Of a stretch of DNA of 30,952 nucleotides, positions 1-23,718 are shown piece by piece. Positions within the stretch are counted from its first letter, which is position 1. Each line of letters opens with the position of its first letter. The stretch spans positions 926,202-957,153 of the forward strand of contig NW_003314301.1 of NCBI RefSeq assembly GCF_000143415.4, given 5' to 3'. The DNA comes from Selaginella moellendorffii. Lineage: Eukaryota; Plantae; Lycopodiophyta. Below the pieces are notes generated by a model, which saw only the letters and a list, made by a program, of their open reading frames with translations, was not told where the DNA came from and ran no database searches. The translations under genes and the position numbers were made by a program.

Positions 1-1341
1 AAGTGCTAACAGATCACCAATGAGCGATAGAAAATGCTACAACCCTTTCCAACACCACAATGGGCGAAGTCAAGGAACTAAGGAACCAACTTAAGCTTAG
101 CATAATGGACCACCATTAAGAATCCAGTCAAAGCTACTACAATGCTACTTCATGCAAGTAGACTTAGCTTCACCATCAACAACTTTGGGGTTGATCATCG
201 TTTAACCAAGCAACTTCGTAAACACATTGCTCATTATCACATGGATATGATATAGAAATCACAATGACTTGATCATCAATTGAGCAACACCACAAGCAAT
301 GCCAATGTTATTACTTCAAAGGTTTATGTGAGTATCAAGTGCTAACTCAATTCGACAAAATGCAACATAAATGCCACACTCCACCGATAGAGACTTACAA
401 CACCCAACATCACTAACTTTTGTTCACTACATGGACAAGCTTATGCCACTCTCTTTCCGACCAAACTCAAAACTTAATCTAACACCAAGCTACTCAAGGA
501 GCAATAGCAAGGTTCCTCAGAAAAGAATTGAGCATTGCAACCCAAGTCTTTCAATAGCAAGCCTAGACAAAATGGTTTAGCGCTTCACCGCTATCCATCC
601 CATAACTCACCATTTGTAAGACCATCATCTCCAAGATGCATCAAGGTAGGGACTCTTGATTGCATGATGTGAACACGAGCAATGAGTCACCCCTCGTTGC
701 AAACCATCTCTCCAAAAGAGAAGATGATTTACGTGTTTGATCCTTCGTCCCCGACGACTCTCTTTTCGGTCTCATCTTTGACTACACTTCAAGCTTGCGT
801 TCGCACTGCCTTCAGTCCAATCCAAGAAAAGTTTATAAGAGAGCACGGCAATGATTACTTGAACCAATAGATTAATCCCTACAGTCTTGATTGATCCACT
901 TGTAATCATGCCTAGGAAGGATCTACTAGTGCCGTGCTAAATAGCTACGGACCAGCCTATTTGCCACTCATAGCAAACTCAGGGAAGGTTTGCTCTTACC
1001 CACGGTACATGGAACAACTCATGGAACCACTAGAACAACTCATGGAACCACTGAGAGGCTAACATTAATCCTGCCAACTCAAAGTGTAACCTTAAGTTGC
1101 TAATGTGCCTCATTCACGAGCCCAAGCGTAAACTCGTGTAACCGGAACAACTCAATCCCTTTTGTGAGCCCAAGCTCAAGCTCACAGAATATGGTACAAA
1201 AGGTAACCAAAACCATACCCAAGGAACGAATGTGAACCCTTTGCACCAAACGTGTACCCACTCGGATCATCGTTTTCATCTCTGCGTATGCAACGAGACT
1301 AGTTGCCCAATCTCATTGAATAGTACTCGCTGAGACTCATC

Positions 1342-1352
1342 CTCTGATACCA
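1342..1352 (-). promoter_or_regulatory. Primer-binding site complementary to the 3' end of tRNA-iMet
   Basis: Plus strand ctctgatacca equals TGGTATCAGAG on the minus strand, separated from the LTR end by 'aa'. Confidence 0.9.
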
Positions 1353-1354
1353 AA

Positions 1355-2503
1355 TGTAGCGCACGTGGTTTTGACCTTTTATCCTATGGTGATTTACCAT
1401 AGGATAACACCACGAAGCGGAACCTAAACCCTCTTTGTGCCACGTGACAGATGCCACATGTCACATGCCACGTGTCCATGCCACGTGTCCATAGGAACCC
1501 GAGGTTCAGGGCCTTGGGCCACTGAACGAAGGAACGGTGCCAAACTCCCAAGCATGAAGCCAAGGAGTGACGGAACCGAACCACGGAGCAACTCCCGAGC
1601 ATAAAGCCCAAGGAGCGAAGGGACAGAAGCCCGGAGCGACTTGGAACAGTCCTGGAGCAACCAGCATCCCAATGCCAGGACTAGCACACAAAACGGAGCC
1701 AAACAGAGTCTGGCGCTATTTCGGCATACCGGTGGCCTAACGTGAGGATATGGGTACTCCACCAACTAGCATGGAATGGAACTTGGGCTTAGACCCAAGC
1801 CGGACGCAGAACAAGGACAGGCACGCAAGCGGGAGCTAGACTATGCCTCAGGTTGGTCGGCCATGCCCGACCTACCCACTATCCCTACTATACATTTGGA
1901 ACCCCCCACAGCCCCCCCCCCCCTTGAGGAACACACGCTTTGGGCTTTCACCCCAAGCCTCCCTTAGTATCAGGAGTTAGTCTCTGGGACAAGCTCGAAA
2001 CTTACTAAATATGGAATGTCCTTAGATTGCGAATTTGGACACGGGACGAACACCATTGTGTTCAGGAAGATCTCTACATTCCGTAGATATGCTAAATGAG
2101 CAAATCTGGACACTTTCCATAAATAGCATTTGGGACCGAAATGAGACTAACACAAAGGGCATGATAGCGAGGGTGTTTTGCAGACACGGTAAGCTATCAT
2201 GTAGCGATATTGAGGGACCAATCTCAATACGCGAGGGTTCTTGTCAAGCCAGTGCAAGACAGAGCAAAAGAGAACTAACAAGCCGGGCCAAGTATGCTCA
2301 GCTCAATAGACACTTAGGAATTCCTTCCTTATGCTCATCCGGCCAAGTACAGATGCAAAGTCCAGTTTACTAACACTTGAACAAGAGGGGCTAATAAAGG
2401 GAACCAGCAATACCGACCTCCTGCCATCGTGGCAGTAAGGTAAGAGTGTCCGTAAGGACTAGTCGACAGGTAACTTTCGATACCCGAAGTCACATGCGCG
2501 ACA
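1355..2503 (-). repeat. Long terminal repeat (5' LTR, about 1149 bp)
   Basis: Starts TGTAGCGCACGTG and ends CACATGCGCGACA (imperfect terminal inverted repeat, 11/13). The boundary is confirmed by the second copy starting TGTCGCG at 8456. Confidence 0.9.
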
Positions 2504-2692
2504 CTACTATACATTTGGAACCCCCCATATCCCCTAGCCCCCCTTCCCTTGAGGAACACATGCTTTGGGCTTTCACCCCTATCTTTGAACCCCACGAATC
2601 GTTTCTCAAGTTGTTCTCTTTAGTTACTTACAGAAACTTACTAAATATAAAATATCCTTAGATTGTGAATTTGGACATGGGACGAACACCAT
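2504..2692 (-). repeat. Fragment of a related LTR directly abutting the 5' LTR
   Basis: ctactatacatttggaacccccc...cccttgaggaacaca.gctttgggctttcacccc...cttactaaatat...ttggaca.gggacgaacacca matches LTR positions about 1885-2057, with a divergent middle. Confidence 0.8.
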
Positions 2693-2699
2693 GGTTTAA

Positions 2700-4450
2700 G
2701 AGGCATTAGAAGGCTCTTATCCAGCCACATACCAAATATATGTGGATCTTCTCCTTGCTTTATTCTGCAGCACACTCACAAAAGGTGGCAATCTTCCTTG
2801 GGTACTACTAGTAGCAACCAACTCCTTGGCATCTTTATTTAAGGACTAGGCTTCTTGGGAGTTCACAGCCCTCTCTGCAATAGCCAATGAGATTTTAGCC
2901 AAGCTTGGAGCTAGGGATAATGTGAAAACAACAAGTGGTGATTTGCCAAATGCAAGTGACAACATTGTTGGTGTTCTAGTCATGATTTTCAAAGATCAAG
3001 AGACATCAGCCTCCACACTCATGAACAATCTCCTTCAACCACACAACTCAAACAACTTGGATCACATAATTCCCAACTAATGGTGTTTACCCCTATTGAG
3101 AAGATCTTGAATTTCTAGAGCCCTTTATTTGAACCTCATATCCACCATGTTGTATGTTCTTATCTACTAACTTTGCCTTTCCAGGACACACTCATAGATT
3201 TATGTACTTTATCATGGATCCCTACAAGATCAATAAACAACACTCTTGTGACCACTCAATTCACTATCACAACTCCAATTTGTTTTCCTCACTAGCAAGG
3301 AGCCTCACTCAAGGATCTATGCCACTCACATCACCCATTTGGATATGGCATATGCTAGCTATGGAGCAATAGTGAGTGCTCCAACCTCTTTTCTTAACTT
3401 TGGCCACACTTAAAAGCTTTTGCATAACTTCCTTGCCACTGAAATGAGTCTTCTTTAGTTGGCAATAGCTTTATATCATCCTAGAGTCACCACTCCAATA
3501 CTTCAATATGGCATCACACAATCACATGCCTTTGGGTTTCTTCATGTTTCAGCTCTGATTCTCTACATGGTGTCCTCAAGCATGGAGCCTTCCCAAACAC
3601 CCTACATATCACAGAGATCCAGCATAACTATAGCCATAAATTATATACAATTTCATAGTAGCTTTCTCAAGTACGTAAACAACTAAAGAAAACAACTCAA
3701 GATATAATTCAAAAAAGTTCAAATATAAAGAGAAATAGCCTATCCCTTAAAAGATTTTCCAATCTTAAGATATTTAGGGTTAAGCCCAAGAAGTTCAAAT
3801 TCAAGAGTTTGTAATTTGCCCATCGGACTTCTACAAGCACTTCAGATGACTTTCTCCTCTTTAGCAACATCAACATTCCCCATTTAGGAACAATCAGCAC
3901 AACCCAACATTATGCTCTAAGTTCTCATACCAATGTCTTTTGCAACTTCAGATTCTCTTGACATCACAAGCTTTAGACCATCTTGCTTGACTTTAACTTG
4001 ATTGTCCATGGAATCCAAAGCTTTCTCTAGGATTCCTTTTGCCCTTTAGATGCGAGCTTCTTCACAACAACACTCAAGAAAAACTCAAGTCACCACCTTC
4101 TTTACTAGTGCTCCTTTCTTTTCTTCTTTGTTTTCAGTTGCTTTTCATGTTCTTCTAGGTAATTTTCTCTTGCAAACACAATCTCAAGCTTGGATTCCAG
4201 CCTTGGATGCCCTTAACTCCTCTTTTCTAGGAGCTCATTTATTTCTTGGCTATTTCCCCTTTATTTCCAAGTTCTTGTCTTTATCACTTTTAACAACACA
4301 TCCTCCAATTTTATTTCCATCCACTTACATTTACAAAATATCACTCTATTCACTCTCAAAATCATCATCACAAATATCTGATCTCTATTTTTATCAATAC
4401 AATGCAGATATAATCAAGCTTTTTGAATGTCAGAAAAAAAAGATATAACT
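2700..4450 (-). other. Decayed, probably TE-derived coding sequence (unassigned)
   Basis: CpG-depleted, purine-rich on the minus strand, with short protein-like stretches broken by stops. No domain recognised. Confidence 0.3.
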
Positions 4451-5030
4451 TGAACCATCACAGCATGAGACTTATGGCAAATCTAAAGACATTCCAACTT
4501 TTTTTTTAGTCAATTGGGCTTGCATAGAAAAGGCATCTAGACATTCATTAGTGGAGTAGACAACTCCCCTGCCACTGATTCCTCATCACCTGGTCGTGAT
4601 GTTTGTTATGCAATTAGGGTCAAGTAGAGGATGTCTTCCATGTTGCCAAGCTTTTGTCTTGCTGTGAGATTAATTCCCCTGGCTTAGCAAAGTTATATCT
4701 CTCCTTGTGACTCTGGCCACTAGTACTGCAAAACACCTTGCAAACTAGAGATTAGAGTGCAGAAGGCGACTTGCTGATCTTGCTCAAAAGAGACCCAGCT
4801 CACCACGATCCAAACTCTCATCATCAGATTATAGAAAAAATATTCCACTTCCACCAAAGTATAACCTCTTAAGAGCGTCCTGCCAAGTTGCCCTGGAGCT
4901 GCTCACATCAGTGAAATCTCTCATTCCAGCTCTGGAGCTCTATGTAGCATCCTGCGACATGATCGGCTAGCTAGTGGGATCAATCCGTGGCTGACAATCT
5001 CCGCGATGTTAAGGAGCCGATTGAGCGAGG

Positions 5031-5841
5031 ATGAACCTTGTTCCGCTTGAGTCTATCTCAAGCAGTGAGGCAAAGTAAGAACCGATTTTGTTTTATTTCT
5101 TTCTTCCGGCTTTTTTTCTTGATTTTGATCTTGGGGGCTCTCTCGTTTGATCTTGTACCTCATTGTAGGTGCTATGCGATTCTCACTTCGTTACACATGT
5201 TCGAGAGCTCCGAAATCGGAAAAGCTCTTCTGTATGATCCAAAGATCTCGTCCAAGGCGGCCATCCGGCAGAAGCATCGTTCCTCGAGTCCATGCGGCTC
5301 ATGTTCCCCAACAAGCAAAAGCTTCGTGCACAAGCAGCGGCAGAAGAGTGTCCGTGATACTTTATACAAGAAAAAGAGAGGCTTGGTAGACGACAAAGGC
5401 GTGCTTGATGGCATCGCCAACGGTGGGAGCCATATCAACCTTGGAGAAGACGACTTGGACATCCTAGTTGATCTGGACGATCATGCTTTCTCTCAGATGG
5501 TCGATCTTCTTGCTACAGGAGGGATTGAAGCTGTCATTGGAGCTTTCCCTGTGAATCTGAGCTGGAACCGCAGCAGGATACCAAGGACGAAGTCTCGCTT
5601 GAGAGTTTACCCCCGTGATTCATCTCAAACTAAGCTTGACAAACCAAATGGAGCTGCCGAAAATGACGTGAGTGAAGATGCCAAGAAAGAGCTTCGTTCA
5701 AGACCAGAAATGATCAAGAGTAAAGAGACAGCACCTATTGAGAAAAACTATCATATTGAAGATGGAAGGGAATGCATGACGTCCGGGCCAGGGTACACTT
5801 TGCCTGCGAGTACCTGTCGGGTTTCGCCGTATTTGTTTTGA
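5031..5841 (+). CDS. Hypothetical protein of about 238 aa (exons 5031-5074 and 5169-5841)
   Basis: GTAAG at 5075, a pyrimidine-rich tract and TAG at 5168 define a 94-bp intron. Splicing joins ATG 5031 (MNLVPLESISSSEAK) in frame to the long open frame (CYAILTSLHMFESSEIGK...SPYLF*). CpG is retained, unlike the flanks. No family recognised, and it could be a gene fragment. Confidence 0.45.
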
Positions 5842-5909
5842 AGCAAAGGCGCAAGGATTTGGAGAAAAGGACCAAGAAAACTTTATTTGAATTCTTTAAT
5901 TTCCACTTA

Positions 5910-6361
5910 TCAAGCAACACTCCCATCAATAGTGAAGTGAGCCTCTTCACCATTAAAAGACCAATCCCATCGTCCTGCCTTTTGTGGACAGGCGTTTCGC
6001 CCACATGTGGCTTGCATGCATTGGCTAATGATATTATTACATCCAGTCTATTAAGATTCAAAATTACCATGTAATTAGTAAGTATTAGTTTGAAGCTTGC
6101 CTCGCTTACCGTACAATATTTTGCCTTGGAATTGCCTGTGAAAGTTAGAGTGACACTTCTTCTCCTTCCAGATGAATCAAACCCAAAAATATATGTTTTC
6201 CCATTGTTGGCTATATCAGCACCACAAAAAGTATTGGCAGCTTGTTGGTAATTAGACACTGTAAGCCCTGCTGGCATGGAACCTCCATAACAATCAGCAC
6301 TATAAATTACACCAAAGTACAAAAGGTTAAGAAACATAAGTGCAATAATTACTCTATCCAT
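5910..6361 (-). CDS. Small secreted cysteine-rich protein, 129 aa (exons 6361-6110 and 6047-5910)
   Basis: Signal peptide MDRVIIALMFLNLLYFGVIYSA. The 62-bp intron 6109-6048 has a GTAAG donor, TACTAAT branch site and TAG acceptor. The spliced frame continues ...KYCT|TGCNNIISQCMQATCGRNACPQKAGRWDWSFNGEEAHFTIDGSVA*. Seven Cys. Confidence 0.85.
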
Positions 6362-6423
6362 TGTGATTGAAAAGATGTATTGCAATGTCAGGTTTTCTAG
6401 GCAGTTCTTTAATAGTTGATTCA

Positions 6424-6640
6424 AATGTGTTCTATTAGAACACGCAAGTATTTGATATGATATGTGATAAGATCAATGACTTTTACTACTAATCCTACCC
6501 CATTAGTTGATTGAATGTTTTCTATTAGGACACGCAAGTATTTGATAAGATTCATGATAAGATCAATGACTTTTACTTCTAATCCTAAGGACACCCAAGT
6601 ATTTGATAAGATATGTTTATGATAAAATTTTATTTCTATC
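6424..6640. repeat. Tandem repeat, unit about 90 bp, about 2.5 copies, upstream of the secreted-protein gene
   Basis: acac(g/c)caagtatttgata occurs three times (about 6439, 6530, 6591). tgataagatcaatgacttttact.ctaatcct occurs twice. Confidence 0.85.
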
Positions 6641-7425
6641 ACTTTATTCAATTAATAGTTTATTTAAATGCCCATTATTAAAATAAATCAAATTTAGGAT
6701 TTTAATATAAATTTTCTAGGTTATATTTAGTGTAATATAGAGCCCAGAAATATTCAAAGCAATATTTCATGACAGTTTTAGACTGTAACCAAAGATAGCA
6801 GTATATAGAAGATCCACAGCATCTATAGTCTTAGGTGAGGCTTGGGGTCAAGTTGTACTGAGTCTTGTGGTGAGTGTCTAATGGAGTTAGCAAAGATCCA
6901 ACAGGACATTTATTCAAAACTTGCACAAATAAAAAAAATCAAGAACAATTCATATGTTGAGGTAGCAATGGAAGACTTATTGTCATATCTCGTTTAGCCA
7001 AAAATCAAGGGTGTCTCTTGTGCAAGAAGTGATACTCCTTCTGGAATGTCCAAGAGTGAATTTGCAAGCCCCTTATGTGTTTCTTACACAATTCTAACAG
7101 CCTGCTCTCACTTCAGTTTTGGCTTGTTATAAGCACAATACAAGTTTGGTCTACTAGTTTATACCTAGTGTGAGCTTTGTGTTAGTTTTATCCATGAGAA
7201 GGGATTTTGGTAGCTATGTAAATTAGTGGCAAAGGAGTAAATGAGTGAATGATAACTGACTTGGTCAGCCATTCATCTAATAGATTTGATCTTTTGTACC
7301 TTAGATAATATTATAAGAGTGTATGCCACTTTAGTATAGAAATTGCCTGGTAGTTTGGCAATCTAACTACCATATCATCATAAATTCCAAGAATATCTAT
7401 TAAATTTAATTTTTAAGGTTTGTAA

Positions 7426-7492
7426 ATATGTATGTATGTGTGTGTCTATATATATATATATAACTTATGTGTGTCTATATATATATATATAA
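7426..7492. repeat. Compound (TG)n/(TA)n microsatellite, duplicated
   Basis: tatgtgtgt...ctatatatatatatataa occurs twice in tandem. Confidence 0.9.
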
Positions 7493-8455
7493 TCGATCTA
7501 GGTAATATACTAATTATAGCACTATAGCATATTTAATCCATCCATTCTGCTATATAAGAAGGGGTCTACACCCCAATTAAGATATTTAATTCTCATATCC
7601 TAAACACTTACGTTGGTGGAAGTAAGGGGCATTGCAATTTATCGCTGAAGGGCAAAATTTTTACTGTAGTGTTTAGGATTATGCTTTTATTTTTATTCTT
7701 TTCTTTTTCTTTTAGATTTAGATTTGTATTAGCTTTTTGTAAGATCTAGAATTTTACCTATTGCTATGTTTAAATTTACTCTTTTTTTTAATCTTTATTA
7801 CATTCCCTTCTTCTATCATGCCATACTATCATTGATCAAGGAATATATCACTTAAAGCTATTACTCCATTGAATCAAGTCTTTGGTGCTATAGGGTGTGA
7901 TTATATTGGTGTTGCATTCATCTTTGATATATTGCTATCTCCAAGTTTTGTGAGATATAATTACATAGCTTTTCTTGTTCTTAGTGTTTTGCCATCTCTT
8001 GTTAATGTGGAGCGTGTTCATGATATTGATTAAAGAGTTGTGAATAATGCAATTCAATCCTTGAAGAATGTTTAAGGATCGAGTTTATAGGAAGATAATG
8101 TTTACGAGTTTGAATAGATTTTAAATTGTGATGGGGAGCTTAATTATTATGAAGATAGCTTTAAAGACAAATTAAAATTTTCATAAGGTAGGTATTAATC
8201 CTTCAATCTATCATTTGATCATCTCCTTTTACTTCTATTTGTTACAACCTTTTTTTATTTCTCGGTCTTTCTCAGTTTAAGCCATCTTCTCATGTTCTTA
8301 GTTTTTTGTTCCTTATTTCCAGTATCTTCTTCTCCTAGCATGTCAATCATTTATGACTTTTATGATTCTCATTCTCAATGTAGTGTTGAGTTGAGTGTTT
8401 TCTGTCCTCATACTAATTTAGATGTTAAGCATGTGCATAAAGTTAAGGATCTTGC

Positions 8456-9571
8456 TGTCGCGAATATGACTTCAGGTATCGAAAGTTACCTGTCGACCAG
8501 TCCTTACGGACACTCTTTCTTTACTGCCACGACGGCAGAAGGTCGGTATTGCTGAGGCCTGTTATTAGTCTCCACTTAAGCTAGTTGAGAAACTGGTTTT
8601 TGTGTGTGCACTTGACCAAATGAGCATAAAGACGAAATTTTTAAGTGCTATTAGTCAAGCATACTTGACTTGGTTAGAGAAACTCATCCGTTGACTTGCA
8701 CTTGCTAGTGTTGGGAACCCCCGCGATATTGAGATTGGTCCCTCAATATTCACTAAATAATAGCTTACCGTGTCTGCTAAACACCCTTGCTATTATGCCC
8801 TTTGTGTTAGTTTCATTCCGGTCCTAAATACTATTTATGGAAAGTGTCTAGATTTGCTTATTTGGCATATTTACAGAATGTAGAGATTGGCCTGAACACA
8901 ATGGTGTTCGTCCCATGTCCAAATTTACATTCTAGCACCATTCCATATTTAGTAAGTTTCGAACTTGTCCCAGAGACTAACTCTTGATACTAAGGGAAGC
9001 TCGGAGTGAAAGCCCAAAGTGTGTGTTCCTCAAGGGGGGGTGGCTGTGGGGGGTTCCAAATGTGTAGTAGAGATAGTGGGTAGGTTGGGCATGGCTAACC
9101 AACTCGAGGCATAGTCTAGCTTCTGATTGCGTATCTGTCCTTGTTCTGCGTCTAGCTTGGGTCTAACCCCAAGCTCCACACCATGCTAGCTGGTGGAGTA
9201 CCCATATCCTTGCGTTAAACCACTAATATGCCAAAAAAGTGCCAAACTCTGTTTAGCTCCGTTTTGTATGCTGGTTCTGGCATTGGGATGTTAGTTGCTC
9301 TAGGACTGTTCCAAGTCGCTCAGGACTTTTGTCCCTTTGCTCCTTAGGTTGTATGCTTGGGAGTTGCTCCGTGGTCTGGTTCCATCACTCTTTGGCTCCA
9401 AGCTTAGGGGTTTGGCACCATTCCTTTGTTTAGTGGCCCAAGGCCCTGAACCTTGGGTTAGTGTAGTGCATGTGGTTTTGACCCTTTATCCTATGGTGAT
9501 TTACCATAGGATAATACGAAATGGAACCTAAACCCTTCATGTGCCACGTGTTACATGCCACGTGTCTATAA
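8456..9571 (+). mobile_element. Solo LTR of the 1355-2503 family, with its 3'-terminal ~110 bp inverted
   Basis: 8456-9459 is the reverse complement of about 2503-1496. 9462-9571 matches 1355-1493 in the direct orientation. No adjacent PBS or internal domain. Confidence 0.9.
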
Positions 9572-11729
9572 GATAGTGGTGTGGTGCTTTTTTTTTCATT
9601 AGCAAAGTCTTTAATCAATTATGCTATTTAGTATTCCCTTATTCCAAGGTTGACTCACTTTTGCAAGAGTTTCGACTTGAATATGTATCCCTGGTTATGA
9701 GTGCCATTGAGAGCTTTTGCTTTACTATTGCTACTAAGGAGTTTATGTATTCTCTTAAAAGTATGGACATTTTTATTGATTTCCCATGTCAAGTATTGAA
9801 TTGTGTGTTGAAAAAGTTGAGTATTGTGAATTTTTTGCTTATATGGTGGTGGTGAAAGTATTTTATGACAAAAAGTCTTTTGTTTTCTAAACATTGAGCA
9901 CATATCCTTCTTTTTCATTTCCCTATTTTTGCATTAACAACTGCTAAAAGTTCCTCATTTAATATTTATATATCCCTTTTTTTTCTTCTACAATATTTCT
10001 TTCTCAATTTTTCTTACTTTCTCTTTTTTGCCTTGACACTTTAAACTTTTTTTCTTTAGAAAAGGGGGTAGAGAGGATAGATAGGAGTTCAACCTTGACA
10101 ATGGAGTAAGGATGAACAGATACAATAGTAGAGCAAAGTGGATTGTGAAGTGAGGACAAGTATAGTGAGTCCGAATAGAATATTTAACCCTAACATAATG
10201 AAGACGAATGAATATAATAAGGGAGTGAGGCCAAATATAAATAATAGAGTGAAGATAAGTGTAGTAAATTTGAATGAAAACAATACTTTTTTCTTTTGAG
10301 AAGGAGATAAAGAGGACGTGGAGGACAAATGGAGTGAGTCCGACCTCCTATATTTAGTGTTAGATAAAGATGAATGTCATAAGTTTGAGTTAATATAGGT
10401 TATGAATATTAATTGAAGGGAAAACACAAAGGCAAGTTCTACTTATGCTCATAAGTTTGAGTTAATGATGGTTTCAAAGAATCGTTAGCAGACAAATTTA
10501 AAGGCAAGATGTATTTTTTGTTACAATGATGTTTTATAGATTGTAGTGGCTCTTGAAGTCCCTTTTTTCAGTTTGATTTGAGGTTGGTTTAGACTATACT
10601 TAACCAAAGAAAATGACTCAAGATACATTCTATAAAGTTCAAATATAAAAAAAAAAAATCTATGAAAAAAAATGCATCTCCTTTTCGAATCAGTTAAGGG
10701 TATTAGTATATCTGAGATCTTTAGGTTTGAGTAGTATTAGGTTGGATGACTTCTTAAGAAATTTAAATTCAGAAGTTTACATTTTGTATTAGAGGGGTTT
10801 TAAGTTTGACTTTATTGGTTAATTAAGGGAATCGTAAGGGTCTCACGTTTGACTGTGTTGGTTAGCTAATGGAATTATACCATATATTGATATTGATATA
10901 TAGTGATTCAATTTACTCTAGTTGGGCTTGACCCAAGGAATAGAGTGTCAAGAGAGTTGCAACTTTCAACTTTCATTCACATAGGCATAAACTTGCAAGG
11001 AAATATGATGAATCATAAGTAATCAAAGAGAACGACTCAAAAAATAATCTATAGAACAAAAGTGCATTCTCATTTTCAATCGGTTAAAGGTCTTGAGATA
11101 CTTAAAATTAAGCATCCTTGGGTTATAAGAGCTTAGATGACCATTTTATTGCTACATACAAAGTTGTAATTGGTTCATCAGGATTCTGTAGTTAGCTAAT
11201 ACATATAATACATGTATTACATTATGTAAGTAATAGATTAATTAATAGTACTATAACATATGGATCATCCATTTAGAACTAAATCTAGTTCATCCATTCT
11301 CATATATAAGCAAGGGGTTAAACCCAAATTAAGGTACCTATTCCCAAATCCTGAGCATTCATAATTTTATATTAAAAAATGTCAAAATCATTAATGGTTT
11401 TTACATCATTTTGTTTTTTAGAAAACAAGATCATCACTAGCTTGTTTGTATGCAATAGTGGATAAACATAATGCATGAAGCGTTTTCATACTTTGTGTGC
11501 ATATCTGGGGGAAAAACACACTAAGTGATTATATTCTATGGAAATGTCAAACAAATTCTCTTAATTCAAACAAATTCTCACCTTTTATAAATAAAAAACT
11601 TTTTAAACACATGTTTTCTACTTACTTTTTCAATATATAATTACATCAGGCTACTATACAATTTCTGGCATAAAGTGGGAAATCTCCATGTTATAAACAA
11701 TAAAGAGAAAGAGGCTTAGGTAGGCTACC

Positions 11730-14137
11730 TTTTGAAGTTCATTGTTATCACTTGTAAACCTTTAGAGGTACAAGAGAAACTTGGAAATTGCAAACATACT
11801 TTTTGGAACCTCCAGGATCTTCCCTTCAATAAACTTTGTGATCTACAATACCTCCACAAATGCAAACTTTACACCGAGAGGTTACAAGCAAAATTTGGTG
11901 TTTATGGTATTCCTGAATCAGCCTTGGTTCAGCTGTGTTACCCACATTAGTGGGGAGTTAACATAGCTCAAATGTCTCCTTCCATTTAACAAGTCATACA
12001 ATTGGGTTTGAACACAGACCTCAAATACAAGGAATGGGAGTTGATGAGCAAAGAATGCTCTGATTGGCCTCGTTTACAACCTCGGCATGTGACAGGAGAC
12101 TTCATATTCAGCAAGTCCTCAAGAAATTGCCATCTACCATAGGGAAACAAGTTTCAATTCCATCAACTTCACTTCCTCCCCAAGAGTGGCTAAAACTAAT
12201 AGACAATATGAAGTTGGACAAGTGTTTTGATTGTAGAGCAAAGGGACATAGATAGGTTTGTAAGGCTTATATAGGTCAGCAATAAGGAGCAAGCATGAGC
12301 AGGTTGATGAGCATTTCAACAAAATGGTGAGGGAAATCTCATTCCAGTTGCTTTTGAGGATTTGGATTTGGAGTAAGAGTTTTTCGTTTAGGAGGGAAAA
12401 TTTCTGTCTCAAGCTCCTGGGGAAGAAGCCACATTGGGAGCCACCATTTCAGTGCCTAGGAAAACAGGACTCAAGTGCATTTGGGTAAAAGGGGCAGTCT
12501 TAGGTTGTAAAGCACATTGGTAAACTTAGGAGCTTCACATTCCTTTGTGACTGCTCATAGCTTTGGTTGATAACCAAGCCAGCTCTCATTGGGGATCACA
12601 CATTGAATCAAGTTAGAATCACTCTCCATTGCAGTTAACTCTTCAATAATTCATCTTAGCCCATTTGCATCACATGTGCTTCTTGTTCTTAAGGACTGTT
12701 TGTGGAGGATTACAGGGCTCTTAACAGGAGAACTGTCAAGAACAAGCTTCCTGTTCCCAGGGTAGATGAGCTTTTGGATGAGGCAGTACCAAGATTGACC
12801 TTTGTTTTGGTTAATATGAGATTGCCATAAGGCCAAGACAATGTTCAGGACTCACTGTTGAGATTTGTTTCATTTCAGAGTAATGCCCTCTGGCCTTATT
12901 AATGTGCCTGCCATGTTCATGAACAAGCTTTTGGCTAAGTATCTTTTCCAGTTCATTATCGTTTTGTTCATGACATACTAATCTATAGTCAGGACTGGAT
13001 TGGAAAATGGTGTTATCAATTTTGGAGAGTAATATTTACAAAGTTATTCATGTGTTCTTTGGGAATGGAGACCATTCAATACCTCAGATTTTGGTAAAGT
13101 ATGGGCTGATCAATCAAAATTACAAGTTGTTGCAAATTGGCCACTTCCCAAGTCTCTAAAGCATTTACAAGTATTTTATGGTTTTGCCAACTATCTATGT
13201 TGCTTTATATTGTGACCCCATTTGGCAATATTTCCTGCTCTTCTATGGTCAGATGCAGCACAATCGTTTGAGTTGTTGAAGTAACGACTTCTAACTGCAC
13301 CATTACTTTCACTTTCAGATTCCTTGGAACCATTTATTGTTAAGATTGATACTTCAGATATGAGTGGTTCTTCGCCAAGGAGAGGAAATAGTGGCCTTTG
13401 ATAGTCATAGTTTCTCTATTTATGAGTCTAAAATACCAGTGTATGAACAAGAAAGGTGGCCATTATCCATGCCATTGGTCACTAGTGCCACTACTTATTG
13501 CCTCAATGGTTTACACTCAGGACAGACCATTATAGCTTGAAATTCATTTTGGAGTAACAACAGTTATCCAAAAAGTAATAACACTAGGTGGAACAACTTC
13601 AAGCCTTGGATTTCACTATGAAGTTCTGGCTAGGGAAAAGCATTCTTCCATAGGCATTATCACAACAATTTGAATGTCTCAAAGTGTTAACGTTCTCTAG
13701 TATTTCCAGATGGGAAGCAACGTATGTGAATAAGATTCTACTCACTAGATTTGACACTATTGGGTATTTGGCAACAGTTCTGTGACAATCCCGATTATAC
13801 AGATGACAAGCTGACATTTCATAAGAACTTATTATGGCGGTCTTATAGTTCTCAGTTCAAGTCGTGATTTAAGCAAGGAGATCTTTCAGGAGTGTCATGC
13901 AAGCATTCTGGCACCCTGATGTTTGGAGAACAACAACTGCAATCAAATAATGGTTTTACATATTTGAAAGGTTTGCAACTGGACACATATCTGTTCTACC
14001 TATCAAACATAGAAAGGTCTTTTGGTTCCATTACCAGCTGCCTCTTCATCCAAATAGTATTTCAATGGACTTTATTGTGGGCATCCCTTCAGTGCATAGC
14101 CATGATGCTATTTTTGTAGTGGTGGACAGTTTTTCTC
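11730..14137 (+). mobile_element. Degenerate Ty3/gypsy gag-pol (gag zinc knuckle, protease, RT, RNase H, integrase N-terminal part)
   Basis: CFDCRAKGH (zinc knuckle, about 12222), ALVNLGASHSFV (protease, about 12512), FRVMPSGLINVPAMF (RT, about 12875), IVKIDTSD (RNase H, about 13335), ISMDFIVGIP...AIFVVVDSF (integrase, about 14060-14135). The order PR-RT-RH-IN is gypsy. Many stops and frameshifts. Confidence 0.9.
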
Positions 14138-14138
14138 C

Positions 14139-14850
14139 CTACATCTTCAACAAGCTCAGCACATCAGAAAGCTGAATCCTTTTGGTCTGAGGTAGTCCAG
14201 CATCACGGTTTTCCATAGAGCACCCATAGCTCCAGCTCACACTGTCTTCAACATAGACAATAAGCATAGCTGAAATAACAACCATCATGGACATGTAATA
14301 CCAGCTGAAGAAGGTGCTGGCCTGCTTCTGTTCAAGAGGATCCTCCTTATCAAACTGATTGCCTCTGAACGATGAGATGCAAGGCTGATATCCTCCATAA
14401 CCCATGGCTACTGTGTAAAGTCCAAGATCTAGAAGCGCTTCTTGTTCCAATGTGCTAACAGAGCATTTTGACACATTCGTTTCACAAGGAGAAGGTTTTA
14501 GCAAGGGCAGAGTTATGTGACTGTAAGTACACCATTCCCTGAATGATAACAGGTTAGGGAACGAGATTTTATTCTCAACCTCTTACCAGAAGGTAAATAT
14601 GAAATTTGTAAATTTGTACGGAATCCACCCAGCAAGGAACTGAGGTTTCCATGGAATTAAGAACGGCATTAGCTGCTTCTGAAATATGCTTATGTAGTAC
14701 ACTACTGAGATAGAGAATTAAGTTAGTCCAAACAGAAGCAAATGTTTGAGTTCCTCAAAGTTAAACTAAGAACAGTTCCAACATAACCCCAAATATATCG
14801 AGATGTGGCAGGCCAATTGGTTGTTGCATCCTTCCATTCCACAAGAAACA
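14139..14850 (-). pseudogene. NPF (NRT1/PTR, POT family) transporter, 5'-half pseudogene fragment
   Basis: TNLILYLSSVLHKHISEAANAV and LGLYTVAMGYGGYQPCISSFRGNQFD...FFSWYYM...LIVYVEDSVSWSYG match NPF TM1-TM6 motifs. Short intron GTAAG...CAG at about 14587-14540. Deletions and frameshifts are present. Confidence 0.85.
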
Positions 14851-15011
14851 AGGATCAGCCTAGCACTAATAAAGAAATAAAGGATTGTTATAATTCCTCA
14901 GCCGCATTATTAGCAGGCCCTTGTCTGCATCAGGAATCGTGACAGATATAAAAGTCCCCGATTGTGCATCTAGCCTCTACAACATTCTAGAAAGACCTTG
15001 CCAGACTCCAG

Positions 15012-15111
15012 NNNNNNNNNNNNNNNNNNNNNNNNNNNNNNNNNNNNNNNNNNNNNNNNNNNNNNNNNNNNNNNNNNNNNNNNNNNNNNNNNNNNNNNNN
15101 NNNNNNNNNNN
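15012..15111. other. Assembly gap (100 N)
   Basis: Run of N. True size and contiguity are unknown. Confidence 1.
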
Positions 15112-15270
15112 GTTATCCAGACATCAGAACATGTCTCGAAACAAATACCGTCGTCCAGAATAGGTCATGGAGAAGCTCCAACCTTTGCTGAACCTGTCCC
15201 CCAGAAGGTCTACAATACTGACTCACTGGCCTGTTTTTCTGCTGGTGGAAATTTTGCAACCCGTGTTTGA
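15112..15270 (+). other. Possible terminal exon of an unidentified plus-strand gene, convergent with the SSL gene
   Basis: Open frame VIQTSEHVSKQ...NFATRV* runs from the gap to TGA at 15270, 27 bp from the SSL stop codon. No family recognised. Confidence 0.3.
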
Positions 15271-15297
15271 ACTTAACTTCTAAATAAGTTTATGTGA

Positions 15298-16893
15298 TCA
15301 TGGGAGTATGAAGCTGGTAATCTGATCGTGCACGACAGTTCCAAACCAGATCTTCCCATCTTTTTCATACACTTCGCTTATAAGTTTCACGATCCGGGCC
15401 TCGCGGTCTTCCAGCCGCCGGAGCAACCGCCCCCGCTTGTCAAACAGCGCCGCAACTGAGTACATCTTCTCCCCGACTACGTACATGATCCAGCTCAAGG
15501 GAACCGGCACCCGGAACACGAGCGACTTTAGCCACGGAGTGGAGCTCATGATCTCCTGGATCCTGTTTCGGCAGCAGTCGATGGCCACCCAGAACTGGCC
15601 CTTGTCGTTGATACGAACGTTGTCAGGATAGCCGGGAAGATCAGCGAAAACTTCGAGAGTTCCAGTTAAGTTACCTTTGAGCCATAACTTGAGAACCCTG
15701 TCAAGAACACGAGCAAAGTTTTTTAAGAGAAGCTACTGATGCCATATCAAAATACAACAAGATCAATATGTATAACCTGCAATTGGTTGTCTCGACTACC
15801 AGGAGGAAAGATTGATCGCTTGCGAGCTGGACTCCGTTAGCAAATGCTAGGCCGCGAAGAACCACCACGGCGTTGCCTGTGTTTGGATCATACCGAAGTA
15901 GACGGCCTGTATTCTCTCCTTCAACGATCACCATGTGATGTAACCTGTATTGAAATGGAAAGAAAAAAGAGCAAGAAAAAGAAGCCATAGTAAAAAGAGT
16001 GTTAAAAAAACATTTCTGGCAAAAAACTGCGACTCAAAGAGCATGGAAGACCAGCTATACAACCAGCTATACAAAGAACAAGAAAAAGAGCAAAGTGTCA
16101 TGGAAGTTGAAGAAAGAAACTCTCCAAGAACAAAGACCCGAAGTGGAAAATGAAAAGAACCTGCGATTCCAGCGCGTGCTTGTGTCGGTAAAGTAGACGG
16201 ATCCATTGGGATGAACATCGAGATCGTTGGCAAACTTGATAGGAATCCCTTCCACCTCGCTCACCAGAGGTCTCGCAATCCCACCCTTGGGGCCAACAAC
16301 GAGCAAACCATAGTAAGAATCGGCAATGTAGAGATCGCCCGAGCGAGGATCGAAGCGCAATCCCAGCGGCCTGCCACAGACGTGCTCGTTCCTCACCCGC
16401 CGTCGCGGATCGTCTCCATTGTCGCATTCTTCCCTGTTCCTGCAAAGAAAGAAGATGAAGAACCCCACCCTAGAAAATATTTTGCTTACCAGTTGATCGA
16501 TGAGAGGGCAAACGTTTCCCATCCGCGATCCGGCATCCAGCGAACGATCCGGCCATCGCCCAGCCCAGTGTAAGGCCCATTCCCCTGTGGATCGAACTCG
16601 ATGCTCTCGGGTCCGAAGAGGCGATCCTGGAACTCGATGCTTGCGAATTGGAGCAAGCTATCGTTGCGCGATGGCCACTTGGGCAGGACGCTCTTAAGAG
16701 GAGCGATCTGGTGCTTCACGGGGTAGTATTTGAGGCCGCCCAGCGGCCCAGGCAGGATCGCGCAAAGAATCGCGGCTGTGGCGGCTATAATGGCGATGGA
16801 CACAAATCTCTTCTTGTTCTTGAGCTTGGAGAAGGCGCCGTCTTTGGAGTTTAGCTCCATTGATTGATCCAAGACTCTTTCCGGAGAAACCAT
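15298..16893 (-). CDS. LAP3: Strictosidine synthase-like protein, LAP3/MS45 type, about 416 aa (exons 16893-16490, 16439-16161, 15944-15777, 15697-15298)
   Basis: GT-AG introns of 50, 216 and 79 bp. Exons sum to 1251 nt in frame. Motifs GPESIEFD, CGRPLGLRF, FANDLD, YFTDTS, GRLLRYDP, FANGVQL, LPGYPDNVR and FWVAIDCCR, the last being typical of the LAP3/MS45 subgroup. N-terminal membrane anchor. An alternative ATG lies at 16860. The family call is firm and the orthology less so. Confidence 0.9.
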
Positions 16894-17019: not shown

Positions 17020-17515
17020 TCATGGCACTGGGAAATGGCACTGTCCAATGACAATGGTGCTGGATGGTGCATTGTCCGGACTGTTGTGTTGATTATATCG
17101 TTGTTCTCCAAGAAGTTGCCCAATAGCAATCGGTAGCTGCCAGAAGACGCTCGGAAGAGGAGCTGAATTTGTTCTTGCCACGGACTTCAACCTGAAGATC
17201 TCCACAACAGTGGCACAGACCATTGCAGTTGTTACAACTACCTTGCCGGTTCCCATTCGTTGCAGGTTGGTAATTCCACGCTCTTTGCCTGTTAATGTAT
17301 GGGCTGCTGGAACTAGAAGCCACTCATATGCAGGACTGCATATGATGACACTTAGCGTGCAAAATGTTGACAGAGATCTTGGTGGTATTTTGAAGTTGCC
17401 TACCAGCGTGTTCACACCAGCGCCTTGCTCGACAAACAGAGTGCTCACTTGTGTGTACAATGTTGAGAATATAATTGTTGTTGACCAAATAGGGAGGAGT
17501 CGAATTGCATTAGTC
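17020..17515 (-). pseudogene. NPF (NRT1/PTR) transporter, 3'-half pseudogene fragment
   Basis: IRLLPIWSTTIIFSTLYTQVSTLFVEQG...FKIPP...GITNLQRMGTG...SVFWQLP matches NPF TM7-TM10. The sequence is degraded after WQLP. Confidence 0.9.
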
Positions 17516-18879
17516 TAGACCTACCAGTTAAGAGATTATCTTGAAAATAATGGTGTTGTTTAGATTTGGAATATAATACCATTTCATATTGGCAATGAAG
17601 GGTTCTAAATGAATAGTTAGGATAATGTGTAAGATGGGCATGATTGACCAACTTGAGATATTGTTATAGCTTCTTATTGGGTATATTTATTCCTATTTTG
17701 CATTTTGGTCTTGGCATTCAATGCTTTAAAATTATTTTAATATCATTATGTCTTCTAATAGTTTGCTCCTTTGCTTGTATGCTTAGGAGTTCAACTTTAT
17801 CCTTTTGTTTAGTGATGCAAGACTTTGAAATTTTAAGTTCCACTTTATTGTCCTATGTGTCTAAGAGTTAGATTCTGCCATGTGGTTATCTTATTAATTT
17901 ACTATAGGGTATAAAGTGAAAACTATATGCACTACATTTGGTATTAAAGGATTAGTTTTAGCAATTGCCAACTATGTCATCAACTTACACTAACAAAATA
18001 TTTCGAAACTGGAAGACTCACAAGGAACAAACAACCTTAACTTTATTATCCACTACATCTGAGAGTTCCACCATACTTGAAACCTCAACCATAGCAAATA
18101 AGAGTACTAATTTTAAGTTAGCTATCATATCTATAAGGACAAGAATAACTTTGAATTCAAGCTTATATATCTCAAAGAGCTCAATATCAAAATTTGATTT
18201 GGAGCACTAAAATTCTAATTACAGTCACTTATATTGGCATAGAAGATATTAACTATCAAGTTTATAGACAAATCTAACACATTGACATTAACACAATAAC
18301 ACAAATTTAACTCAACTCATCATAAAAATTCTCATGACTAAACTACGAAACTAATTTGCAATCTTCATCAAGATAAGAAAAGTTCAAAAAATCATTAAAG
18401 CTTCACAATAAAAAACTTAAATAGTATAAGACTACAAAAGACAATAATGGAATAGAATTAAAAGAAAAAGACACGATAATCGAAGAAATTATAATTATGA
18501 TATTTTTCATCTTTGAATATAGGATACAAGAATACTCCTAAAGCCATTCAAAAATCAAAATTTAAGAAAGAATCTTTAACTTAGTTTACAACAAAAAAAC
18601 TCAAAAAAACCATACACTAATACATTTACGAATCATCATCCATTAGGATAAATTTATAAAAAAAACAATACAAGCTAGAGTTTTATATATGGAAATTCAT
18701 TCTCAAGATTTCTTGGATTTCCCATATTTACCTAGATCAAAAGTACATTTGCTAAATAGAAGAAATACAATACACACAAAATAAAATTAATTGAATCTAC
18801 ATAAGATTTCCAATTTTTCTACTTCAAAAAATTAAGAAACTCATTAGACAAGAATTCTTTCAAGGATACATCACACTTG

Positions 18880-19657
18880 TTGGTGCAGCCATACACAACA
18901 GTTTAATGGATAAATTGAGTGCACCAACTAGACTCTATAAACATTTTTACAAGGCTACATGGTGGACTTTCCAACTACTTGGCTTCACTAATTACCATTT
19001 GTGGAGCTAGCAAACAACACCACAATTCACTCATCCATGGGACTGGCTCCTTACTCAATCCTCTATGGACAAACAGTGGCCACCTTGGCTTTTCCAGTGA
19101 AGGAAGGGTGTGTTCTGCTGGTTGAAAACCATCTCACTAAGCTCACCACTATTCATCAGGTGGTAACTCAACATTTGGAGTTTGCTTGGGCCAGGATGAA
19201 GTTCTATACAGATAAATCTCATTCTCCACTCACTTTCTCAGTGGGGGATTGGGTTTACGTCTGTTTCAAGCCCCAGTGTTATACATTGGGACAGAAAACA
19301 GTAACTAGGACCAAGCTTCATCCAATGTTTTGTGGCCTGTTCAAAATTCAAGAGCGAATCAATGAGGTGGCATTTCACTTGCAACTTTTAGCTTCAAGCA
19401 GGGTCCATGATGTCTTCCACATCTTCGACCTTAAGCTATACCATGGAGAGCCACGACAAGAGCAAGTTCCCTTCCCAGCCTTGTTGCCAAGGGATCTTCC
19501 TTTGCTCATCCCAGAAAGTATTGTTTGCATCAATGTGTGTCCACTGAGGAGTAGGTCCATCCTGCATTTCCTCATCCACTGGTCCAGTACTGCCCATGAC
19601 AGTGATACTTGGATCACTCAGCAACAGCTTGAGGAGCTCAAGCTTCTTTTCAACTGA
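18880..19657 (+). mobile_element. Ty3/gypsy chromovirus integrase C-terminal part and chromodomain (degenerate)
   Basis: PFVELANNTTIHSSMGLAPYSILYG, FSVGDWVYV, KLHPMFCGLFKI (GPY/F-like), VHDVFHI, and FLIHW...DTW (chromodomain-like). Confidence 0.9.
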
Positions 19658-19669
19658 GTTCCAGTCTGG

Positions 19670-20440
19670 CCCTTGTGGACAAGATCATCACGGAACACGA
19701 GATTAAATTGAAAGACAAAACTTCAACATGCTTGGAAGATTTTCTTGAGTTGCTGCTGAAGCTCAGGAGCACAGAGGATGTTCTTCAACATAACACTATT
19801 AGGGGCTTGATGATCGTAAGTACTTATATTTCACTTCGTTTAAACTTAACCAATGTTTAACAGAATTTACTTCAAGCTGATACACCATCTGTGTCCCTGG
19901 AATGGACTTTGGCCGAGCTGCATGTCCATGGTCCAGGATGAGATTGCTAATGTCGTTGGCTCGAACATAATGGTGGAAGAGAGGGACATCCCTAAGCTTC
20001 CCTATCTGCAAGGAATTGTTAAAGAATCACTCAGACTGGACCTTTGCTCTTACCTCGAGAATGCTCCAAAACTTGCGAAGTGATGGGCTACAAAATCCCG
20101 GAAACTACTACTTTAATGGTGAATGCATACGCAATTGGAAGAGACCCAAAAGTTTGGAAGGAGCCCCTTAAGTTCAAACCCGAGAGGTTCTTGGATCACA
20201 ACTGCTTTGATGTTGGTGGCAACAACTTGGAGGCTATTCCATTTGGAGCAGGAAGCAGGGCCTGTCCTGGAATATCTATAGCGTTCTCCATACTTCACTT
20301 GACGCTGGCAAACTTGGTTCATGTTTTCACTGGAGACTGCCTGCTGGAGTGGTGCATATTGACACAAGCAACGAGAAATATGGACTCACTGTGACCCTAG
20401 CAAAGAAGCTGGAAGCCATCCCTCTCTCCAAAACTAAGTC
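19670..20440 (+). pseudogene. Cytochrome P450 (CYP71 clan) pseudogene, 3' half
   Basis: Phase-0 48-bp intron 19816-19863 before the I-helix. Damaged AGTDT (QADT), KESLRL (ExxR), AIGRDP, FKPERF and PFGAGSRACPG heme motif. Frameshifts are present and the 5' half is replaced by the retroelement. Confidence 0.92.
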
Positions 20441-22742: not shown

Positions 22743-23018
22743 TCACTTTTTGCAGCCACGGCCACCTCCTCCTCCACCACCACCACCACCACCACTTCCA
22801 CTTCCTCCAGAAGCACCAGGTGGAGCTCCCCCACAACTAGGCCCACCCTGGCCACCACCTCCACCTCCACCAGGACTGCTGCCTCCACCACCTCCACCGC
22901 CTCCACCAGGGCTGCTTCCGCCACCGCCGCCACCGCCGCCACCACCACCACCGCCTTGGCCAACTACAGAGGACACTGGAATGAGTAGTAACAAGATCAG
23001 AGCTGCCATCCTCGCCAT
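22743..23018 (-). CDS. Secreted glycine-rich protein, 91 aa
   Basis: ATG 23018 starts the signal peptide MARMAALILLLLIPVSSVVG, followed by poly-Gly with SSP spacers, two Cys and a basic tail RGCKK*. TATAAA lies at 23064-23059. Confidence 0.8.
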   Translation of the reverse strand: MARMAALILLLLIPVSSVVGQGGGGGGGGGGGGGSSPGGGGGGGGGSSPGGGGGGGQGGPSCGGAPPGASGGSGSGGGGGGGGGGGRGCKK

Positions 23019-23068
23019 GATCACTTTGATGGTGCATACGCTCATTTCAGTTCTGTCCTTTATAGTGT

Positions 23069-23186
23069 TTCAAGTGTCCGAGGAGCTGCAAGTCAGTCAA
23101 GCACGAGACGAGATAGTGCTTGATCACTGAACAACTGATCATCTCGTCTCGTGCTTGACTGACTTTCAGCTTCTCGGAGACTTGAA
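23069..23186. repeat. Inverted repeat (46-bp arms, 3 mismatches, 26-nt loop)
   Basis: 23069-23114 ttcaagtgtccgaggagctgcaagtcagtcaagcacgagacgagat pairs with 23141-23186 atctcgtctcgtgcttgactgactttcagcttctcggagacttgaa. Confidence 0.95.
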
Positions 23187-23526
23187 TCAAGTATCGCAAG
23201 TCGGTCAAGCTCGAGACGAAATTAACCAGTTGTTCAGTCAAGCACGGAACACTTGAAAATTCCTACAGATCGCGACTTGTTTTGCCTCCCTCGTCCAACC
23301 ACCAGCACGACTGGCGTGCTACATTTGGCGTGAAGCGCATACAGATCTCTAGTAATCACGACTTATTTTGCCTCGCTCGTCTATAGATTTCTACTACCAG
23401 CAGCAGTGCCGTGCTTGACTTTGTTTCTTGACTGACTTGGAAACTTGAAACGCTACAAAGGATATAAAGGCCTGAAATGAGCACTACAGCGTATGCCACT
23501 ATCACAAATCAATCAAGCATCACAAC

Positions 23527-23718
23527 ATGGCTGGACATGCACGATTTCTTCTCACTCTTGTTGTGTTGCTCCTCCTTGCTTGTAATGTAGCAATGGCTGC
23601 GCGTTTCTTAGGCGGCGGCGGTGGCGGCGGCGGTGGTGGCGGTGGCGGTGGCGGCGGTGGTGGTGGCGGTGGCGGTGGTGGCGGTGGCGGTGGCGGTGGC
23701 GGTCACCGAAGGAAATAA
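23527..23718 (+). CDS. Secreted glycine-rich protein, 63 aa
   Basis: Signal peptide MAGHARFLLTLVVLLLLACNVAMA, then ARFL, an uninterrupted run of about 30 Gly and HRRK*. TATAAA at 23463-23468 and AATAAA about 20 bp after the stop. Confidence 0.8.
   Translation: MAGHARFLLTLVVLLLLACNVAMAARFLGGGGGGGGGGGGGGGGGGGGGGGGGGGGGGGHRRK

Follow-up and report, generated by a model that had tools for sequence, protein, structure and literature searches.

The locus described here lies in a window of 30,952 nucleotides (the whole stretch of DNA analysed), which is 100% identical to scaffold GL377605.1 of GCA_000143415.2 from the lycophyte Selaginella moellendorffii; this identity covers positions 1-15011 and 15112-15841, two parts that are split by a run of 100 N. 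The matching part of that record falls within 921,232-942,042, and the candidate would occupy about 932,111-932,562 of it if the locus runs in the orientation of the record. A preliminary description had placed the locus in a plant genome, which proved right, and the other open reading frames (ORFs) of the window that fit a plant host are a strictosidine-synthase-like gene, two PTR2/NPF pieces, a cytochrome P450 piece and a chromovirus integrase piece. The candidate gene occupies the minus strand and converges on the annotated gene SELMODRAFT_418985, from which it is separated by 69 nt (Table 1). Since the annotation of GCA_000143415.2 contains no gene call between SELMODRAFT_418985 and the PTR2 piece, the candidate is unannotated.

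Table 1. Coordinates of the candidate gene and of the surrounding features (positions in the window)
Feature	Position	Strand	Remarks
Candidate, exon 1	6361..6110	-	84 codons, ATG at 6361; Cys 24, 46 and 83 in the mature part
Candidate, proposed intron	6109..6048	-	62 nt, GTAAGC...AATAG, phase 0, GC 0.31
Candidate, exon 2	6047..5910	-	45 codons (6047-5913) and TGA (5912-5910); four Cys, predicted beta-hairpin tail
Signal-peptide-like residues 1-21	6361-6299	-
CTAAT branch-site matches	6088-6084, 6078-6074	-	37 and 27 nt ahead of the TAG acceptor
TATA-like TATTAAA	6408..6414	-	47-53 nt 5' of the ATG, inside the 90-nt tandem repeat (by sequence reading)
AATAAA	5882..5887	-	23-28 nt 3' of the stop codon (by sequence reading)
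Unspliced ORF	5735..6424	-	229 codons from TTG; 208 codons from ATG (6361..5738)
90-nt tandem repeat	6413..6587		1.9 copies, 89% identity; directly 5' of the ATG, over the presumed promoter
SELMODRAFT_418985	5031..5841	+	Convergent neighbour, 238 aa; one 94-nt intron (5075-5168), GTAAGA...TGTAG
Inverted repeat, left arm	1496..2503		About 1 kb
Inverted repeat, right arm	8456..9459		About 1 kb
Repeats of about 108 nt	1355-1462, 9462-9566		Just outside each arm
Third copy of the 108-nt repeat	17895-17962
PTR2/NPF piece	14139-14669	-	Profile positions 30-103
Scaffold gap	15012-15111		Run of 100 N between PTR2 piece and 3' end of the strictosidine-synthase-like gene
Strictosidine-synthase-like gene	15298-16893	-	About 345 nt of intron in total, if the ATG is at 16893
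PTR2/NPF piece	17020-17460	-	Profile positions 217-334
Chromovirus-type retrotransposon piece	19001-19657	+	Integrase SH3 and chromodomain; fragment
Cytochrome P450 fragment	20044-20394	+	C-terminal
Glycine-rich short ORF	22743-23045	-	Signal-peptide-like start
49-nt inverted repeat	23066-23189		92% complementary, between the glycine-rich ORFs
Glycine-rich short ORF	23527-23715	+	Signal-peptide-like start

Elsewhere in the window, the two PTR2/NPF pieces flank the strictosidine-synthase-like gene and are not collinear, thus they are separate gene fragments, one of which is annotated as a 160-aa product. The P450 fragment lies within 400 nt of the chromovirus piece. The two glycine-rich ORFs stand head to head, and their runs of Gly codons form inverted repeats.

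Read directly from the sequence, the two exons of the candidate join into a reading frame of 129 residues. The start ATG, with A at -3 and G at +4, stands in a good context, and the proposed intron is poorer in GC than the exons on either side of it (0.37 in exon 1 and 0.46 in exon 2). The splice signals are canonical and of host type, as comparison with the intron of the neighbouring gene shows. The proposed donor is the sole GTAAG-type donor within the whole ORF, and the proposed acceptor is the first AG downstream of both CTAAT matches. The length of the intron is also in keeping with its surroundings, where the intron of SELMODRAFT_418985 measures 94 nt and that of a PTR2 piece 48 nt; the intron-length distribution of S. 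moellendorffii is reported to be sharply unlike that of other land plants and to cluster with that of most fungi (PMC6157073). The layout given in the preliminary description, with a canonical 62-bp intron, a product of 129 aa, an unspliced ORF of 229 codons, and a particular spacing of cysteines ahead of a quoted tail motif (present at 5934-5969 and around), is thus confirmed in the sequence. However, this intron was chosen after the ORF had been seen, so that neither the splice signals nor the signal-peptide features count as independent tests of the model.

The stop-free run in which the candidate lies extends over 245 codons, and it is probably this run that drew attention to the locus in the first place. 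By chance about 0.05 such runs are expected per window of 31 kb, that is, hundreds in a genome of about 200 Mb, and this expectation favours an explanation without any gene, namely that the frame is open by chance in intergenic DNA that is rich in AT and flanked by repeats, in which case the GT...AG pair, the hydrophobic start and the Cys codons would all be fortuitous. The frequency of GTAAG (0.84 per kb per strand) and the post hoc choice of the model point in the same direction, and we regard chance as a serious rival to the spliced gene, possible if somewhat improbable. The frame of exon 1 also stays open for 124 codons beyond the donor, which has a chance probability of about 0.001 on the local make-up and is a coincidence under the spliced model. 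This coincidence would be removed if the product were the unspliced ORF of 208 residues, or if the intron were usually retained, in which case the Cys-rich tail would never be made. On the other hand, about 35 codons of the unspliced tail run antisense to a coding exon of SELMODRAFT_418985, the unspliced ORF matches no Pfam family, and an exact-product look-up found no such protein on record.

Evidence that bears on all three readings comes from three-base periodicity and codon-position make-up, which are features the preliminary description had not used. Exon 1 is strongly periodic, with G at 0.30 in position 1 and T at 0.49 in position 3 (chi2 22.8, chi2 p 0.0009), and only 0.5% of simulated stop-free stretches of local make-up reach this chi2 (p about 0.005); among control pieces from the window itself, 2 of 24 were as periodic. 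When a position-specific model built on exon 1 was applied to exon 2, the pattern was found again in the shifted frame that splicing predicts: the fit was +5.4 bits in the spliced frame as against -10.5 bits in the unspliced frame and -18.9 bits in the third frame, and only 1.4-2.3% of control open pieces of 45 codons fitted as well. No periodicity was detected in the open stretch 5' of the ATG (p 0.90) or 3' of the stop codon of the spliced model (p 0.39), and no frame of the proposed intron fits the codon-position model of exon 1. The codon periodicity thus begins at the ATG, shifts phase over the 62-nt intron as predicted and ends at the stop codon. That its bounds coincide with ATG, intron and stop counts against a chance open frame, as do the periodicity of exon 1 and the repetition of its pattern in exon 2.

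The same tests speak against an unspliced product, since the tail beyond the donor is not itself periodic over three bases (p 0.21-0.39) and does not fit the make-up of exon 1 (-10.5 and -13.4 bits). A codon table derived from local genes gives a different answer: the unspliced tail scores +0.12 bits per codon, and over the region of exon 2 the unspliced frame is preferred. However, this preference is misleading because the training genes are rich in GC at third codon positions (GC3), and GC3 therefore confounds it. Taking both sides together, we consider translation of the unspliced frame improbable. GC3 itself is 0.26 and 0.33 in the two exons of the candidate, compared with 0.51-0.55 in neighbouring genes, and equals the GC content of local non-coding DNA, which is again what a chance open frame would be expected to have. 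The spliced gene is nevertheless rated above its rivals, mainly because the onset, the phase shift and the end of the coding signal all fall at the positions that the model predicts, and in this respect the preliminary description, which had put the spliced form forward, offered the best reading of the locus.

At the protein level, the N-terminal residues 1-21 satisfy a crude signal-peptide rule, in agreement with the secreted nature claimed for the product, and a helix is predicted at residues 2-21. Hydrophobic N-termini are common in frames read from T-rich DNA, and the same rule is satisfied by 6 of the 105 ATG-first ORFs of the window (5.7%), a point in favour of a chance frame. Seven cysteines (24, 46, 83, 87, 94, 99 and 104, the last four being residues 3, 10, 15 and 20 of exon 2) follow the spacing C-x21-C-x36-C-x3-C-x6-C-x4-C-x4-C. 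The product had been called Cys-rich; the number and spacing of the cysteines hold, but with 7 among the 108 residues of the mature part they are only about twice as frequent as in control open frames, an excess that lacks significance (p about 0.06, and 11% of control stretches match it). This again suits a chance frame, and the count of cysteines is odd. AlphaFold models of the single exons, made with no alignment, gave helices at 2-21 and 38-44 and three strands for exon 1 (pLDDT 51.5), and a short helix with a hairpin at residues 27-40 for exon 2 (pLDDT 57.5). The low-confidence hairpin agrees with the beta-like tail of the preliminary description, while both models are too low in confidence for a fold search.

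Relatives were sought exon by exon, with exon 2 (45 residues) being a weak query. Pfam hmmscan of the two exons apart returned no real family at E up to 1; a V-ATPase subunit row (18.7 bits against a cut-off of 30.7) fell on the hydrophobic start and, like a DUF6429 row at E 0.3, is attributed to chance. The unspliced ORF was included in a further Pfam scan together with nine flanking ORFs, and again no family was found for any of them. Word-based protein searches were blank for exon 1 and for exon 2, the latter search covering only proteins of 25-79 aa and hence saying little. When exon 1 was compared by HMMER with 1.84 billion representatives of public genomes and metagenomes, no true relative, fungal or other, was obtained. 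The ten matches were all long repeat proteins in which many matches of 2-16 bits were summed; in one of them (P0010) a motif of about 24 residues was in common, the alignment placing the signal peptide over a strand of the repeat with 10-13 bits for each unit, and this likeness too is ascribed to chance. Among PDB sequences, phmmer at E up to 10 listed only chance rows for each exon (an RCC1 repeat at 0.017, a Fab and a hemolysin). Metagenome scans with exon 1 and with a degenerate pattern of the exon 2 tail were blank, as was a prokaryote genome scan. No second copy of either exon was found in the window or the locus, and no annotated paralogue in S. moellendorffii.

Because no relatives of exon 1 were found and word-based searches gave nothing for either exon, conservation cannot vouch for the gene. 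The lack of relatives, together with the absence of annotation and of a confident fold, fits a chance open frame, and the same points, with the low GC3 and an odd and non-enriched set of cysteines, stand against the spliced gene. Under the spliced-gene reading, this total lack of relatives is what the term "lineage-specific" in the preliminary description would lead one to expect.

A comparable kind is that of small secreted Cys-containing peptides and proteins of plants that are missed by annotation pipelines. The candidate resembles such missed genes in that it is a short, unannotated two-exon gene model with a signal-peptide-like start, fewer than 160 residues and several cysteines. It differs from them in having no family signature and an odd number of cysteines (seven) that are not enriched beyond chance. 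Plant secreted Cys peptides also usually form multi-copy families, whereas the candidate has no paralogues. Neither exon matched a Pfam family of plant Cys-rich proteins (defensin, thionin, LTP, snakin/GASA, RALF, EPF and others), and the earlier statement that the product does not fit known plant peptide families is thus borne out. The candidate would be of the same general kind as Gnk2/DUF26 (PF01657, "stress-antifungal"), a Cys-containing alpha/beta domain of about 100 residues that plants secrete, but its spacing of x21, x36, x3, x6, x4 and x4 lacks the defining C-x8-C-x2-C arrangement and it has no Pfam match.

The preliminary description had gone further and likened the protein to fungal small secreted proteins of the KP4 or Ecp2/Hce2 class, putatively a toxin or antimicrobial gene acquired horizontally. 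KP4 has ten cysteines, and the seven of the candidate do not fit. The likeness to KP4 (PF09044) lies in a small, putatively secreted protein of a non-seed plant for which a short helix and beta strands are predicted, in pieces and at low confidence, and that to Ecp2/Hce2 (PF14856) in putative secretion and a similar size. There is a precedent in non-seed plants, as mosses acquired KP4-like genes from fungi according to Guan et al. 2023 as cited in PMC12513842, and the codon make-up of the candidate is unlike that of neighbouring host genes. However, the KP4 profile was listed neither for the separate exons (E up to 1) nor for the unspliced ORF, Hce2 was equally absent from the Pfam results of both exons, and no killer toxin occurred among the PDB sequence matches of either exon. 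The search of exon 1 for a fungal relative and the metagenome and prokaryote scans were negative, as described above, and the intron is of host type. The sole positive sign of transfer is the low GC3, and this is the same as the GC of the non-coding DNA nearby. The proposed affinity to KP4, Ecp2/Hce2 or Gnk2 is therefore not upheld by the Pfam and PDB searches of the separate exons or by the database search of exon 1, and we consider a horizontally acquired effector-like gene highly improbable. Fungus-to-plant transfer, or membership of a toxin family, is unsupported by the present sequence evidence and is a part of the preliminary description that should not be carried forward.

The position of the candidate among repeats raises a further alternative. 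Two inverted arms, 84-88% complementary, enclose a stretch of roughly 6 kb that contains both the candidate and SELMODRAFT_418985, and the candidate might belong to a segment that is mobile or was duplicated, either as its remnant or as its cargo, and would then not be an independent host gene. The neighbour is likewise without relatives: its ORF (5038-5841) shares 95% identity with [quoted passage not shown], 5.8 billion clusters contained no other match at an E-value of up to 0.001, and Pfam domains are absent from it. The local codon table gives it a weak score, 0.04 bits per codon compared with 0.18-0.33 in domain-supported exons. The two orphans are alike in lying in the same inter-arm stretch, in having a single short GTAAG-type intron each and in having no relatives outside the species; they differ in that the neighbour shows no sequence likeness to the candidate, has a GC3 of 0.51 and has no noted signal peptide. 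Against a mobile segment stands the finding that no TE protein domain, transposase included, occurs in the scanned ORFs of at least 65 aa between or in the arms, that the ORFs of the left arm gave no protein domain of any kind, and that the exons are not duplicated in the window or locus and have no annotated paralogue. The repeats of about 108 nt just outside the arms are in direct orientation, share 85% identity and contain a palindrome; with a third copy present, they seem to be a small dispersed repeat family that sits at the arm ends in either orientation, and not a target duplication. We find it improbable that the candidate is part of such a segment. The candidate had also been described as intact among decayed TEs, which is a loose statement: its near flanks do contain non-coding repeats, but its nearest neighbour is an annotated gene 69 nt away and the sole remnant of a TE protein is 13 kb away.

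Our best explanation is that the locus holds a real, unannotated and lineage-restricted orphan gene of two exons, whose secreted product would have about 108 residues once the signal peptide is cleaved off, and we give this explanation roughly an even chance of being correct. Transcription would start a few tens of bases 5' of the ATG at 6361, and the 62-nt intron, whose shortness is typical of this genome, would be removed by splicing. The product of 129 residues would then be directed into the secretory pathway by its first 21 residues or so, acting as a cleavable signal peptide, and the mature protein, putatively beta-rich and with as many as three disulfides, which would leave one Cys unpaired, would be released to the apoplast. 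An extracellular role in defence or signalling would be a guess only. In a more far-reaching version of this explanation, the gene would be the founder of a new fold family among secreted proteins with disulfides, having arisen de novo from AT-rich non-coding DNA in the Selaginella lineage or come from an unsampled donor; the latter is hinted at by the difference in GC3 from the neighbouring genes and by the second orphan alongside between the 1-kb inverted repeats, and we think this version unlikely.

If transcripts confirm the spliced gene, it would add one more unannotated, lineage-restricted secreted protein to the gene set of S. moellendorffii. With its AT-rich codons, an intron of host type and a second orphan adjoining, the locus would then provide a clean small case for the study of orphan-gene origin in a lycophyte.
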